A stretch of 64,000 nucleotides of DNA from Chlorokybus atmophyticus (GCA_009103225.1 RHPI01000810.1:1281962-1345961), one strand, 5' to 3'; shown: positions 49,434 to 56,175, counted from the stretch's first letter. The notes: a model not told the origin generated them from the letters alone. Program-made: numbers and translations.

Positions 49434-50560
49434 GTGGCCTCCCCGAAGATCGGCATCACATCGCTGGCAAAGGGGCGGCTGGAAGCGTATGGGTTGGACA
49501 ATGTCGTGTGCTCGCTGTCGCCCGACAACGGCGAGCTGGAGGCGGACTGCGTCCCCTTCCAGGCCGGGTCCTTCGTTGGCAAAATCGCCAATGGTGGACA
49601 CTCCTCTGTTTCCATCAGGTCTCCACTGGCTTCTTCACCCACAACACGACTACGTCTATGGCACCGGGAGAGGAGTACATCACCAACAACAGTTTTGCCC
49701 AACGCAACTCCCTGCCCGTCCTCTTCCGCTGCGCCTTCAAGAAGTCCACACTGCAGCAGCCGCCTTGCAAGGCTGTGCTCCCGGTTTGTGACCTTGTTGG
49801 TTACACTTTCACAACATGAACAACAATAAGCTGGTACACAGGTGACTGCTCGTGTCTTTGCGCGCGCACACATCCATGGCTGCATGGCTGCATGTATGTG
49901 GATGCTCCACGACTACTCTTCTTGTGCACAGGCGCGCACACGCAGGCACACGCTTACATGCACATGCCAATGTGCAGGCATATGGACAACAAATTGGAGG
50001 TCCCTGACAGGCCGCGGCTTGTTGGCGTCCCCAAAGCGGCCGGCGGTGTATGGGGACCACGTCGTGTGCGTGGTGGGCGACCGCTTGGCGACCAACAACC
50101 CGCGGAGAGCGGTGTACATCATCACCTGCAGAGGGGAGGACTTCACCTGCACACGCACACCAACATATCAACTTCCGGCACTTTCACCCAACCGCAACAC
50201 ATTCGGGGTCGTGAGTGAGGCACGCACGCATACATACACCTATATCTTGCTATCAAAACCCAAATTGAGTAAACAAACTAGAATTCATACACTGGTGTTG
50301 CACCAGCTGCCCCGGTAAAGCTCAGCGCATACGTCGCATCAATACGTCACAACCACAAACGATTGCCTGCTGGCAAGTTGCAGTCCAACAATGCTACTTG
50401 CTTTTGTTTGCTCACTTACACGTCCCCTGTGCTACTGTAGCCCACCCGCTCCGGGGTACGTGACGACAATGGGTGTATTGTTGTTCGCACTTGAATCGGT
50501 ATACGACGGTGGTCAGGCCTCGCACGTGCAGCTGACCGACTGCAAGTTAGACCAGACTAC
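49434..50560 (+). pseudogene. Fragment of an unidentified intron-containing gene, frameshifted near 49610 and apparently 5'-truncated
   Basis: Strong C/G third-position bias in frames KIGITSLAKGRLEAYGLDNVVC... and STGFFTHN...LFRCAFKK; tgtgcag|GC acceptor near 49977 with exon GIWTTNWRSLTGRG...YIITCRGEDFTC...TFGV|GTGAGT; further exon PPAPGYVTTMG. No family recognised. Confidence 0.4.
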
Positions 50561-50603
50561 CCCAATGCATCAGTGGTGTGGTTGTGCAAGGAGTTTGATT
50601 GTT

Positions 50604-51540
<937 letters not shown>

Positions 51541-52019
51541 ACTCATGCACGCATGCATGACTGAGCTAGCTGTCAGTCATGTTAGCACGGTTTGCTGTAG
51601 TGTAGCATTTTGAAATCAGTTATGCGCGCACGCAGGTAGCTTAAGTACACGCGCACAGCCACGATCACCAATGTCCGCATGCACGCAGCCACACACCTGT
51701 TCGCATTGCATGTCCGCATGTACATGCGCACACAGAGAGACACACAGTGACGCACGCATCCTAGTATATGCTCAGGTTTTGAGTATGAGCACATCATGTC
51801 AACTCATATGCTGTATACTGCTCTCACACATTAAAACATACACATACATGCAGACTCAAGTGGACACATATGCAGGCACGCAACTTCAGCGTCAAACTAC
51901 TACAAGCGTGCAATCTCCATAATTTACAAAGCTTATTTGTAAAGCTTAAATACAAAGTCCCTTTCATCTCTTGACAAGGTGGAGTACACCCTGTCAAGGC
52001 GAGAGGAAGGCACCGCAAC

Positions 52020-53841
52020 TCATGCATTCTCTTCGATGGCATTCATCTCGTCCAATGCGTGTTGTGTTGAGGACGGTGCATCCGTTTTGTTATGTTTCTC
52101 ATACTGCAGCTCCAGGAACGTGTAGTAATCTGGCCGATTGTCCGCCTCAAGGTAATGTCGATTGCCAACAGGCCACTGCTTCCACAGCTCGAGCCGATAG
52201 TAGTTGGCAATGTCAATCGGCTCCACCATGAGTCGAAAAGTGTTGCCTCTCGCACACCAGACATTGGACTTGCTAAAAAAGTCAGCAGGCAACATGCCAT
52301 CCATGTGCCATTTGTAAGCTGTACGCCAGAAGTCCCGTACAACCCTATCAAGTTGGTGGAAAGGTCATATCAGTACTGATGAAGCTTTCAGTTGCACTGA
52401 GCTTGAAACTGCGATGCATGTCGTCTGACCTGCGTGCGCGCTCAACCTTTTTCAAGCGCTGTTCTTGCGGGCTGTCATCATCACCACGATACGTTCTGAA
52501 CTCGGCGTAGGAGTCCGCAGAGGTCCTCACAAAGGCTTGTATCGTATCCATGGCGTCTTGTACATCATTGCGCCACTGGTTGGTAAACTCTGTTTCATTT
52601 CTGCGCTGCTCGGCGACACTCAACACGCCCACTCTCGGTGAGTCCGCAGCGCTGCAAAGGTGAACGCACTTGAACTACGCATGTCATGTGGTAGGTCAAC
52701 AGGTCCACACTGCACGTTAGATGCCAATCAGGCCGCAATGCAAACCTATGTGGCATGGGCATGGGCTGCACGAAGGCCGGAACACTTCCCAAGTGCTTGA
52801 CGAGGGTGTCGTACCCAACCCAGGGATCCTATTGCATAAAGATAGGAACAGAAGACCACGAGTTACTGATGCAGAGATTGTGACATACCATGAAATACCA
52901 TTCTGACTGGATGCATGCTGCAAGCTCTTTCTTGTTCATCAAGAAGTGGGCACAGCTTGGAGCGAACGCACCACACTCTTTGAACTTGCCTGCTGATCGC
53001 CAAGGGTAAAGTAGCTAAATTTCCGGATCTGCGCAGGTACATGCTTTCTTGCTCCCGGGGGCCGGAAGATGACTGGTACCAACCACCCGGAAAGGTTCTG
53101 CTCCTCATAAACCTTGTTCAATACATTCGTGTACTCGTCGTGCGTCCCGGCCCCCATTTGATCATCTGCGGTGGGCTGCTTCAATGAAAACCGCTCATAA
53201 TGCTCATCACAGGCCACGATCACCTGAAGCATCATAAGACGAGATGAAAGCCTAAGCATGCAATGCTGTAATGCAGATGTGCCTGCTTACTATAGGGAAT
53301 TGTTGAATGTGAAAAGCTGGGAGTGTTGATGACAGCAACCATGCGCAAGGTTTACTATTGGGAATGATATGACAACCGGTACCTTTGTGCCATCGTTCAA
53401 CATCTGCCCAATAAAAGCCGGCCAGGACTGGTATGTATTTTTGTAGTCCACAATGACTTCGATATTGTGTTGTTGCAGTTGCTCGGCAAGCCTCCGCACA
53501 CGCTCTGCGTGTTGGTTGTCAAACTGGCAGTAGCTGATAAACACTGTCAACTTGGGTGCCGCAGACAGTGCCCCTGTAGCCTCTCGTCCCTGTCCGCTAT
53601 GTGCACGGCACACGCAAAACAAAATAAGCAAGGTGCATTTGCCGCAACAATTTAATGCATGCTTGCTCAAAAACCTGCATTGAACTTACGCAATAGCAGC
53701 GTGATTGACAGCGGCTGATTTCTTAAGGTGTTGAGCACTACCATGGTTGAGATATGTGTGGTTCCAGTAGCCAGCGCCAGTGACAATGGATGCAGCCGCA
53801 GCCAGCACTGCAGGCAGCCTCAGAGATACCAGTCCGCCCAT
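52020..53841 (-). CDS. 419-aa protein: hydrophobic N-terminal anchor + SEFIR-type TIR domain + EDS1/PAD4/SAG101-type EP domain (exons 53841-53690, 53596-53383, 53223-52990, 52828-52716, 52651-52430, 52344-52020)
   Basis: Exons total 1260 nt with matching phases and no internal stop; four GT-AG introns and one GC-AG. SEFIR/TIR: PKLTVFISYCQFDNQHAERVRRLAEQLQQHNIEVIVDY...WPAFIGQML..VIVACDEHY..GAGTHDEY..LVPVIF..VP..GYDTLVKHLG..P. EP: SYAEFR...KKVERARRVVRDFWRTAYKWHMDGMLPADFFSKSNVWCARGNTFRLMVEPIDIANYYR...RHYLEADNRPDYY, compared with recalled PAD4 LAKFWDTVIKMVETNELPFDF...LAEPLDIANFYK...GHYLEGNRPKRY. The ATG could lie further upstream. Confidence 0.85.
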
Positions 53842-54820
53842 CTCAAGACGCTTCTGCTTCTCCTAGTAAGCCAAGAGCGGTGCAGGCCAACGCATGGGCA
53901 GCAGCGAGCTCAGCTCCTGTTCAAGTTCAGCATTGGCCATGTCCAAACCACCAAGTGCTGTACAACTGTACAGCTGTAGAAGACCAAACGAAAGGGGTGG
54001 GGGGGTGGGGGGGGGGGTCACCAAGTGCTGTCAGCTGAGATGATTACGACAAAATGCACTATACATCTCTTCATCAGTTCCGACAACTTGCACTACAGCA
54101 AATGCATTGAAGTACGAAGGCATTGCTGTTACTGCAGCCAGTAAGACCCCGATGCCATTGACAACGACTTCACCTACTTGAATACTACAGCATGCTTGCC
54201 CTAAGTTAGAAACGCTGCTGCACACAGGAGGTATACTACTGGCTGGCTGCAAGAAGCACATGTTCATAGAATGTTGGAAGATGTGCGTCTGTCTGTGCGC
54301 GCGCCAGAGTGTGTGCATGCATGCGTCTGTCTACGCACACAGACGCACAGGCGCTCATCAGCATGTGCGGGGTACCTACACTGCTGATGCACAGACTGTG
54401 AAGTTCGTTGAGTTAGAGAAGCTTTCTGGAGGACCGGTTAAGCAGCAAAAGGGGCAACACGAGGGGAAGTAGTCCGTGGGGACACACAACGAAGCGGCGA
54501 GCTCACAAAGCCGTTAGCAATGGCGAGGCATTGCAGCGCACCTGGGCAAGCAGGCCGAACCCTAAGCAGTGCTTGCAGGATTTGTCGCCATGTACATCAG
54601 GGACACTGCGCCGTTGGCGTTTGCTAACCAGCGCCTCCCAGCATGGCGCTGACGTACGAAGCTGGCGCCTGCTGCGCTTTCTCACCCACCCCTCCCGGAA
54701 AGTCCCTTCCAGCCGGGCGGCGGACACCGCCGACACCGCCGTCTCCGACCGCCTCGCACTCCGTGCCAAAGTACACAACACGAGACAACTTTGCTCTGAA
54801 CGTGCATCTCTACTGTGCTA

Positions 54821-55491
54821 CACTGTATAACAACACCATACAAGGTATTGATGGGGCGCGGAAAACAAGAGATGAGCCAGGGATCCTGGCCCGCACTCCT
54901 GGGGCGGCCCCAGGAGTCCTGGTGCATGCACAACATAAGATTCTCCTGTCATGATATAAGATAGGGTATCGGCCGACTGCTGACGTGACGGCTTGATTGA
55001 GACCATCCATTTGCAGCCTGATAACAGCCGTATCGGGCTGAGGACCTCTGCTCGGTGTGACCTAATGCGACCTTTTGACGTACGCAGCTGCTGATATCAG
55101 GGCAGGGCTGGGCAGGGCAGGGCTGGGCCTAATATCACGCCTGATCAGGCTAGACGCATGACATTGGCGGCACGTGATGCACCGCTGCCAATATCGGGGC
55201 GTCAGCGTACGACGCTGCTGATATCTTATAGGGCCTAGCCTGATATCAAGCACAATCAGGCTAGACGCCTGACATTGGCGGCACGTGATGCACCATTGCT
55301 AATATCGAGGCGTTTATAACTCTGGCACTGCGCCCTAACACGACCACGATCGTTCCCACATTGCATGCCACTCCGACGGACCCCTAAGCCAAAGTTATGA
55401 AGAAATAGACCAACACTAAGTAGACCACAATATCTCTCAACCTGAATCATATAATGACTTTAAAACTGCTGTACCGTGTTGCTGTACAGTG
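54821..55491. mobile_element. Non-autonomous CMC/EnSpm (CACTG-type) MITE, 671 bp
   Basis: Left end CACTGTATAACAACACCATACA; right end reverse-complements to CACTGTACAGCAACACGGTACA; 3-bp flanks CTA/CCA (TSD with one mismatch); internal direct repeat ATCAGGCTAGACGC(A/C)TGACATTGGCGGCACGTGATGCACC at about 55144 and 55255. Confidence 0.8.
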
Positions 55492-55599
55492 CCAGCCGGC
55501 ATTGGACGTCGATGAGGGCAGAGTCGTTTTTGCCCTCAGCAGTTTTAAATCGGTTGGGATCCTGCTTGGCTCTGCTGTCCGCTCCCCTCCCGCTCCTTA

Positions 55600-56175
55600 G
55601 ATGTGCGCTCGCTTCCCTCCTGCTACTCTGCTTGGAGTTCCAACGGGGGTAGCCTTCAGCAGCAGCAACTCCTTCATGCGGGGATGGATGGTGCAATTAA
55701 AGCTCAACTTGTGCTCGAGGCACTACCTCTCCCTCATGGGCCGTGCCTTAATCGCCAACCAATGCAATTTTGCTTGCCTCTCGTACATTACAGTGGCCCA
55801 GCCGTCCCAATCCGACCTTGCTTGTCTACGGCATGCATGTATTGTACTTTTGTGGACTTCCCCTGAATAAGGCGCCTCCGAAAAACCCCTCCACCCGAGG
55901 CAAGGTCAGTTAGCAAGTGGTATGTCTTCCGAAAGAAGATGGTGGCCTTTGCGTTCTGGAACTACAGACACAGGCTCTACTTGCCAAGTGGGCCTCCCGT
56001 CGTAGTAATCCCAATTGGAAGCAAATACACCGCCTTAAGGTTCTTGGTAAAGCGAGGTCTCTGCTGTGGCTTTTAACGCGTAAAGCTCTTCACACCGGCG
56101 ACAAGCTCTTGCACATCACACGGCGCCTGCAGCAGAATCCGTTCTCGGCACAAGCCAATTGTGCCGTCAGCGGCA
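55600..56175 (+). mobile_element. Fragment of an L1/Tx1-clade LINE ORF2 (post-RT region and zf-RVT-like part)
   Basis: TLLGVP...RHYLSLMGRALIAN; VCLPKEDGGLCVLELQTQALLAKW; NWKQIHRLKVLGKARSLLWLLTRKALHTGDKL, all typical L1 C-terminal motifs; frameshifted. Confidence 0.8.

Follow-up and report, generated by a model that had tools for sequence, protein, structure and literature searches.

An expressed Chlorokybus gene joins an EDS1-type EP domain to a SEFIR/TIR-like domain behind a weakly hydrophobic leader

Gene structure, transcript and start codon

The DNA analysed here is a stretch of 64,000 nucleotides (the window) from Chlorokybus atmophyticus, a member of the earliest-branching streptophyte lineage. 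Its minus strand carries an expressed gene, Chlat1/626, which encodes an EP protein. The exon structure is based on contigs of three public runs from two studies, which are 99–100% identical to the window. The runs are labelled ‘RNA?’, and their contigs are regarded as spliced RNA because introns with GT..AG or GC..AG ends are skipped in them. Six spliced joints are backed by RNA contigs from the two studies. Contigs of this type are blind to rare isoforms and to the exact transcription start.

The transcript begins with a non-coding leader exon (54542..54754, 5′ end at or beyond 54754) that contains two short, closed upstream open reading frames (uORFs). Spliced contigs of runs X1 and X2 join 54542 to 53916 across a 625-nt GT..AG intron in the 5′ UTR (53917..54541; joint 53915/6 to 54541/2 in both runs). 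A repeat scan of 54700–55700 found tandem units of 111–127 nt at 55079–55313 and nothing else. The second exon (53690..53916), defined by ORF translation and spliced contigs, bears the start codon and is followed by a 93-nt intron (53597..53689), also defined by spliced contigs, that interrupts the coding sequence of a polar linker. The next exon (53383..53596) encodes the first half of a SEFIR/TIR-like domain at 53383..53547, and this exon alone matches the Pfam profiles TIR_2 (7.6e-6) and SEFIR (8.2e-5). After an intron seen in spliced contigs (53224..53382), the second half of this domain is encoded by 52990..53223, as indicated by contig joints and translation; the exon ends at a GC donor (CAG/GCAAGT), and the intron behind it (52829..52989) is of the GC..AG type, with joint 52828/52990. 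A short linker exon (52746..52828), placed by joints 52828/52990 and 52651/52746 and by translation, is separated by an intron (52652..52745; joint 52651/52746) from a helical exon that precedes the EP domain (52430..52651; contig joints, translation, and AF2 pLDDT above 90). The last intron (52345..52429), seen in spliced contigs, leads into the exon with the EP core and the stop codon (52020..52344), which matches PF18117 with an E-value of 1.3e-9 and 38.5 bits against a cut-off of 23.1; the 3′ UTR continues to about 51848. With the RNA-supported splicing, the coding sequence comprises 1230 nt including the stop codon, i.e., 409 residues.

The protein starts at ATG 53841. On the minus strand, translation of the open reading frame 53841..53686 gives MGGLVSLRLPAVLAAAASIVTGAGYW and then a polar stretch, and a GTAAGT donor lies directly after base 53690. 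An earlier reading of this DNA, made from the sequence only, had proposed this start codon and this donor; both were correct, as three runs from two studies have spliced contigs with the junction 53690 to 53596, and an in-frame TAG (53865–53863) is located eight codons 5′ of the ATG in the same RNA-supported exon. The in-frame translation in this region runs ...LLAY-stop-EKQKRLE, and the same TAG terminates a 10-codon uORF that begins at ATG 53895 of the exon. Since this TAG separates the leader exon from the ATG, an N-terminal extension is impossible on the observed transcript. The next in-frame Met after 53841 falls within the SEFIR domain. Because of this Met, the TAG and the closed uORFs, the protein start is placed at 53841 and no domain can be added by an upstream exon. 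The sequence-only reading had allowed for upstream exons, possibly coding for a lipase, through an acceptor at 53863/53862. A single upstream exon is indeed present in the RNA, but it is non-coding and shut off by the TAG. That acceptor is unused in the contigs, its bases being part of the TAG itself, and what had been labelled exon 1 is actually exon 2, which extends to 53916 and is preceded by the 625-nt intron and the leader exon.

A search with the last exon among 1.8 billion representative proteins retrieved the public model of this gene, jgi/Chlat1/626/Chrsp103S01043 (P0004, 415 aa), which has an identical start and whose record carries precomputed SEFIR and EP matches. It differs from the RNA-supported form solely by six extra residues, as the annotation passed over the GC donor used in the RNA and took a GT donor lying 18 nt farther downstream. 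The same six residues are also missing from a sister protein, P0092. Exons were searched singly, and the whole-protein analyses described below were run on P0004, which is six residues longer than the RNA form.

Domain architecture

The protein consists of a 66-residue leader, a SEFIR/TIR-like domain, a linker, and an EDS1-type EP core, in this order. In Pfam, SEFIR (PF08357) matches residues 68–200 of P0004 with 3e-10 and 41 bits (cut-off 23), covering positions 2–143 of the 150 of the profile, and TIR_2 matches residues 69–197 with 37.7 bits. The fold matches of this part are 9ot1 (IL-17R/ACT1), 8qlp, and 4c6s, at only moderate AF2 confidence for the region. EDS1_EP (PF18117) matches residues 298–402 with 5.8e-10 and 38.5–39.6 bits against the cut-off of 23.1, a match that spans only about positions 27–122 of the 211 of the profile. 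The EPxDIANYYR and NRP motifs are retained in the EP part, and the EP exon matches PAD4 (5.2e-5) and EDS1 (9e-4) among the sequences of the PDB. The AF2 model has pLDDT values above 90 over residues 245–415, and the best 20 PDB matches found with Foldseek are all EDS1, PAD4, or SAG101.

The sequence-only reading had described an EP protein without a lipase-like domain, and this description holds. Neither Lipase_3 nor any other hydrolase has a Pfam match on P0004, and a motif scan of the protein and its paralogues found no G-x-S-x-G. Over 4 kb of upstream DNA, the motif occurs only as two chance matches outside any lipase context, and tblastn with algal lipase pieces found no lipase-like sequence in the whole 64-kb window. 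A lipase hidden upstream is ruled out by the TAG-closed frame, and none was found nearby with the motif scan or tblastn. The same reading had also placed an N-terminal hydrophobic anchor in the position of the lipase. This part has to be revised: the position occupied by the lipase in EDS1 is taken by the complete SEFIR/TIR-like domain, and the leader is a 66-residue addition ahead of it. The fusion of SEFIR and EP was found here only in Chlorokybus, and a paralogue hinted at by a loose end at 53550 proved absent from the 64-kb window.

EP was also suspected to be a shuffled module. Indeed, it is joined in different genes to TM helices, TIR, SEFIR, LRR-SEFIR, TNL-type pieces, and lipase. The commonest architecture among the complete EP relatives is an N-terminal hydrophobic helix followed by Arg/Lys, with P0007, P0014, P0021, P0027, P0035, P0036, P0041, P0075, and P0077–P0079 as examples (TM-EP proteins). 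A strong helix of this type, with a 19-residue Kyte-Doolittle mean of 2.0 or higher and a Hessa sum of +0.3 or lower, is present in at least 11 EP relatives, including five from Chlorokybus. Their charge pattern is predicted to place EP on the cytosolic side.

The N-terminal leader

Codons 1–26 (53764..53841, minus strand) encode a Met-Gly-Gly start, with Gly2, Ser6, and Arg8, and an Ala-rich hydrophobic helix at residues 9–24, as delineated by hydropathy, the AF2 model, and comparison with P0092. The polar linker behind it (residues 27–66; 53551..53763, minus strand) is poorly conserved in the alignment and has pLDDT values below 50. A hydrophobic leader before a polar linker had been recognized earlier as an uncharged segment of about 20 residues; the leader and the linker are confirmed, whereas Arg8 lies inside the segment and the hydrophobic core is short, with 13–17 Ala-rich residues. 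Hydropathy was computed with the Kyte-Doolittle and Hessa scales, the Hessa-scale sums being simple and not position-weighted. On this basis, the best 19-residue Kyte-Doolittle mean and Hessa-scale sum are 1.73 and +4.6 kcal/mol for P0004, 2.01 and +2.6 kcal/mol for P0092, and 2.0 to 2.7 and −2.8 to +0.3 kcal/mol for the TM-EP relatives. The classic Kyte-Doolittle threshold for a membrane helix over 19 residues is 1.6, and P0004 is just above it. Judged by these values, and set against the far stronger helices of the TM-EP paralogues, the leader appears marginal as a membrane helix, and its flanking charges fix no orientation. In the AF2 model, residues 9–22 form a lone helix of low confidence that is undocked on the domains.

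Hydrophobicity alone is weak evidence here, and the leader is counted as a real feature because it is conserved in P0092. This sister protein (Chlat1/3612, 416 aa) is 82% identical to P0004 overall and begins with M-G-G-L-A-S-L-R-L-H-A-V-L-A-A-A-A-A-I-V-A-V-A-G-Y-W, so that 21 of the 26 leader residues are identical, including Gly2, Ser6, and Arg8. The substitutions S18A, T21A, and G22V raise the hydrophobicity in P0092. A word search with leader residues 1–66 returned P0004 alone and missed P0092, which shares the leader and was recovered by a search with the SEFIR part. Homologues differ in this respect: P0092 shares the putative anchor, but a third full-length sister, P0006, has LRRs in its place and becomes similar to P0004 only from residue 40, and the TM helix of the TM-EP neighbor P0014 shows no similarity to the leader.

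The leader may be a weak membrane or secretory targeting element, and we consider the chances about even that it serves in membrane targeting. N-myristoylation follows a pattern of Met-Gly at the start, no charge at position 3, one of Ser/Thr/Ala/Cys/Asn at position 6, and any residue but Pro at position 7. As a pattern match only, it is present in both P0004 (M-G-G-L-V-S-L-R) and P0092 (M-G-G-L-A-S-L-R). Weak membrane targeting would be provided by the myristoylation-type start with Gly2 and Ser6, by Arg8, and by the Ala-rich helix of 13–17 residues.

As a rather unlikely alternative, the leader might be cleaved off as a secretory signal peptide or function as a type II signal-anchor, and SEFIR-EP would then be luminal, vacuolar, or extracellular. 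By eye, both paralogues have the n-, h-, and c-region layout of a signal peptide: Arg8 is in the n-region, the h-region of 12–15 residues is short for a plasma-membrane helix, and the small residues at −3 and −1 before Gly-Tyr-Trp occur in T-G-A of P0004 and in A-V-A of P0092. The free helix of the AF2 model, undocked on the domains, would also suit such a role. As far as is known, however, the characterized domains of the SEFIR, TIR, and EP types all work in the cytosol, which is also the side on which the charge patterns of the TM-EP relatives would put EP. Moreover, the protein holds three cysteines, and the Asn27-His-Thr sequon is lost in P0092.

With similarly little confidence, the leader may be seen as a young, disordered, Ala-rich extension of a soluble cytosolic SEFIR-EP protein that has no targeting role and is shared through recent duplication only. 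Its hydrophobicity is near the shuffled level (277 of 5000 shuffles of the protein, or 5.5%, reach a Kyte-Doolittle mean of 1.73), pLDDT is below 50 throughout residues 1–62, and relatives beyond the two close paralogues lack it, as in P0006 with its LRRs. Nor is 21/26 identity, at 82% overall, by itself above that of the rest of the protein. Against this, the hydrophobic part has no indels, and the substitutions in it leave hydrophobicity the same or higher; the adjoining linker, in contrast, has accumulated two indels (of 7 and 2 residues in P0092 relative to P0004) and more changes. Furthermore, EP proteins of this family as a rule have a hydrophobic helix at the N-terminus. Least likely of these alternatives, and very improbable, is a transit peptide for the chloroplast or mitochondrion: in its favor are the high Ala content of the first 66 residues (16/66), their net charge of +4, and their single acidic residue, but only one basic residue in the first 39 leaves no amphipathic presequence, Ser and Thr together amount to only 8/66, and the P0092 leader, with five acidic residues and a net charge of +1, does not conserve the acid-free character.

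If the leader does serve in weak membrane targeting, it might tether SEFIR-EP to a membrane on the cytosolic side, either as a signal-anchor or as a helix assisted by a lipid. The stronger N-terminal helices of the small TM-EP paralogues, whose EP would be cytosolic by the flanking charges, may play the same tethering role. At the membrane, the SEFIR half could make a nucleotide-derived signal, which the EP half would bind.

Algal lipase–EP loci and comparison with known systems

Outside Chlorokybus, the EP exon has its nearest relatives in KAK9825429.1 from the trebouxiophyte Elliptochloris bilobata, a chlorophyte alga, and in short ORFs of metagenome contigs; they are about 59% identical over the EP core exon. 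A match from Armatimonadota (P0026) was not counted as an EP relative, as its ten matches to the EP exon are a repeated motif of the beta-strand type that inflates the score. In Elliptochloris (locus L004, contig JALJOU010000074.1 of GCA_040144335.1, with the lipase-to-EP interval at L004 4800–8610) and in four metagenome or run-assembly organisms of algal type (loci L001/L002, L003, L005, and L007), class-3-lipase pieces lie 2–3 kb upstream of EP on the same strand in every locus. The segment L007:879-1145 matches Lipase_3 with 50.4 bits and holds I-V-F-T-G-H-S-L-G-G. Among all solved structures, those of PAD4 and EDS1 are the only ones matched by the next lipase segment (C-I-T-F-G-A-P-L-V-G-D ... 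R-H-D-L-V-P-R-I-L), and the nucleophile exon is somewhat closer to fungal class-3 lipases than to EDS1. EDS1-family proteins of Taxus and Ginkgo are collinear with these loci, with an N-terminal lipase part, the Ser elbow, the Asp segment, a region at residues 270–330, and EP. The one-gene status of the algal loci rests on this collinearity; gene callers would have split these genes, and NCBI annotates the Elliptochloris locus as two genes. A conserved coding piece between these two gene models suggests that lipase and EP form one gene in Elliptochloris that was split by annotation, which would explain why surveys of domain co-occurrence missed lipase-EP genes.

In the EP tree, the lipase-linked algal EPs group with the SEFIR-EP genes of Chlorokybus (support 95/92), and this clade includes neither gymnosperm EDS1 nor the TM-EP genes of Chlorokybus, which have a clade of their own. 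A constraint tree that holds all lipase-linked EPs together is rejected with a p-AU of 0.0145 for a group that was named after the tree was seen. The fusion of lipase and EP is thus either old or arose twice. The simplest reading of the sequences is that it is old and that the SEFIR-EP gene would be a domain-swapped derivative, its lipase-less state then reflecting a domain swap within an old lipase-EP/EP family and not a primitive state.

The sequence-only reading had instead suggested that the lipase partner was acquired later. In the corresponding scenario, EP was first a free, lipase-less module that gained its lipase only on the seed-plant line. All EP proteins recovered from Chlorokybus lack a lipase part, and the literature puts lipase and EP together in seed plants only (PMC10834447, PMC9806590). 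Lipase_3 and EP are, however, found together in Elliptochloris bilobata and four other algal-type loci, collinear with gymnosperm EDS1. One of the algal lipase segments is matched by EDS1 and PAD4 only among solved structures, and the EPs linked to the lipases group with that of Chlat1/626, not with gymnosperm EDS1. A late lipase consequently appears quite improbable, and the lipase half need not be a late addition.

Returning to the domain swap, we tentatively propose, as something possible but less than probable, a fuller history in which green algae have long possessed lipase-EP genes, frequently arranged head-to-head with TIR genes. Chlorokybus would have swapped the lipase for a SEFIR enzyme domain and added a membrane-targeting leader, yielding a self-contained, tethered signal maker and sensor. 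If this is true, seed plants did not invent the EDS1 module, and its link to TIR is older than land plants.

To date, the EP domain has been held to ‘uniquely define[s] the EDS1 family’ (PMC9806590), and EP proteins have been found in seed plants only (PMC10834447). A 2026 preprint (10.64898/2026.05.20.726525) reports only ‘short EP-like sequences’ in green algae and leaves open how non-seed plants read TIR signals. The literature searched contained no paper dealing with EP proteins of Chlorokybus or with lipase-EP genes of algae. Chlat1/626 provides a transcript-supported, full-length EP protein from the earliest-branching streptophytes, with a SEFIR/TIR-like domain as its fusion partner and possible targeting to a membrane. 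The side result of class-3 lipase and EP in algae may matter even more than Chlat1/626 itself. If transcripts confirm the algal lipase-EP genes, the origin of the EDS1 architecture moves far back, and these genes become tractable systems for what EP domains sense.

Among known proteins, the small TM-EP proteins, such as that of Chlat1/627, the adjacent gene model on the scaffold, resemble Chlat1/626 in having an N-terminal hydrophobic helix and EP but no lipase. Their helices differ in being strongly hydrophobic, 19–21 residues long, and directly followed by Arg/Lys; they have no SEFIR, their leaders are dissimilar in sequence to that of Chlat1/626, and their EPs form a separate clade. The algal lipase-EP genes (the KAK9825429.1 locus and L001–L003, L005, and L007) belong to the same supported EP clade as Chlat1/626. 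Yet, where Chlat1/626 has SEFIR, their lipase-like half contains G-H-S-L-G as well as an Asp segment similar to that of EDS1. At L001, L002, L003, and L005, four of the six loci, a TIR gene lies head-to-head with the lipase-EP gene.

The full-length SEFIR profile is common to Chlat1/626 and the SEFIR proteins, i.e., IL-17 receptors, Act1, and bacterial SEFIR defense proteins, and the fold of this part is like those of the IL-17RA/RB/ACT1 SEFIR and the SPARTA TIR. In IL-17 receptors, as in Chlat1/626, SEFIR comes after a hydrophobic helix and a linker; in contrast to these receptors, Chlat1/626 has an N-terminal stub of only 8 residues, no ectodomain, and a fused EP. With EDS1, PAD4, and SAG101, Chlat1/626 shares the EP domain: PF18117 scores above its curated cut-off, and, in sequence as well as in fold, its best relatives of solved structure are PAD4 and EDS1. 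The difference lies in the N-terminal half, which is a lipase-like α/β-hydrolase in the EDS1 family and a SEFIR/TIR-like domain with a hydrophobic leader in Chlat1/626. Finally, EDS1, PAD4, and SAG101 are proteins of seed plants, whereas Chlat1/626 is that of a streptophyte alga.

Transcript structure of Chlat1/626 and its flanking repeats

According to the spliced RNA contigs, the minus-strand intron of Chlat1/626 at 52829–52989 is of the GC..AG type, with the donor CAG/GCAAGT. The public model (P0004) instead uses a GT donor located 18 nt past this site, which adds six residues; these are absent from P0092, the sister gene of Chlat1/626 in Chlorokybus. In the 5′ leader, three short uORFs precede the main ATG at 53841, i.e., two in the non-coding leader exon (54542–54754, minus strand) and one of 10 codons in the ATG exon (53863–53895, minus strand), and they may contribute to translational control.

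A (GA)n microsatellite of approximately 1 kb (50557–51558), containing one N near 51540, is located about 300 bp past the transcript 3′ end, and two tandem units of 111–127 nt, 85–90% alike, are located upstream of the leader exon (55079–55313).

A transcribed close paralogue

A close paralogue of Chlat1/626, approximately 4% divergent, is also transcribed, as seen in the loose ends at 53550 in sequencing runs X1 and X2 and in record 15 of run X3 (53100–53554). In this paralogue, G-A-L-S-A-T-P-A-A-R precedes L-T-V-F-I-S, representing a two-residue insertion in comparison to Chlat1/626, and it is unlike P0092 at this site. The paralogue was absent from the 64-kb window.

EP loci and a chance EP match outside the window

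P0026, a 1599-residue protein from an Armatimonadota MAG, matched the EP exon with a value of 1.5e-10 through its ten copies of the motif Y-R-W-Y-R-D-G ... T-W-R-C-V-V-T-P. It contains no EP domain and was rejected as a chance resemblance inflated by repeats.

The plus strand of the metagenome contig L006 (2865–7474) carries a TIR, a winged-helix piece of the ROQ1 type and an EP exon, and this locus may be a TNL-type gene with EP at its end.

In Elliptochloris bilobata (L004, 4800–8610) and four other algal-type organisms (L002, 1965–6530; L003, 2595–6560; L005, 4077–7453; L007, 535–3226), EP exons lie downstream of class-3-lipase exons on the same plus strand. In the NCBI annotation, the E. 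bilobata locus is divided into two genes, and the interval separating their models contains a conserved coding piece. Minus-strand TIR_2 genes are arranged head-to-head with the putative lipase-EP gene in L001 (959–1402), L002 (324–1674, followed by a P-loop/STAND NTPase piece), L003 (1750–2130) and L005 (2756–2965). In L005, another TIR_2 ORF is located immediately downstream of EP. The lipase exons of L002–L005 and L007 encode G-H-S-L-G and an Asp segment resembling that of EDS1/PAD4, and the exon order in the algal lipase-EP loci is collinear with the EDS1-family proteins of Taxus and Ginkgo.
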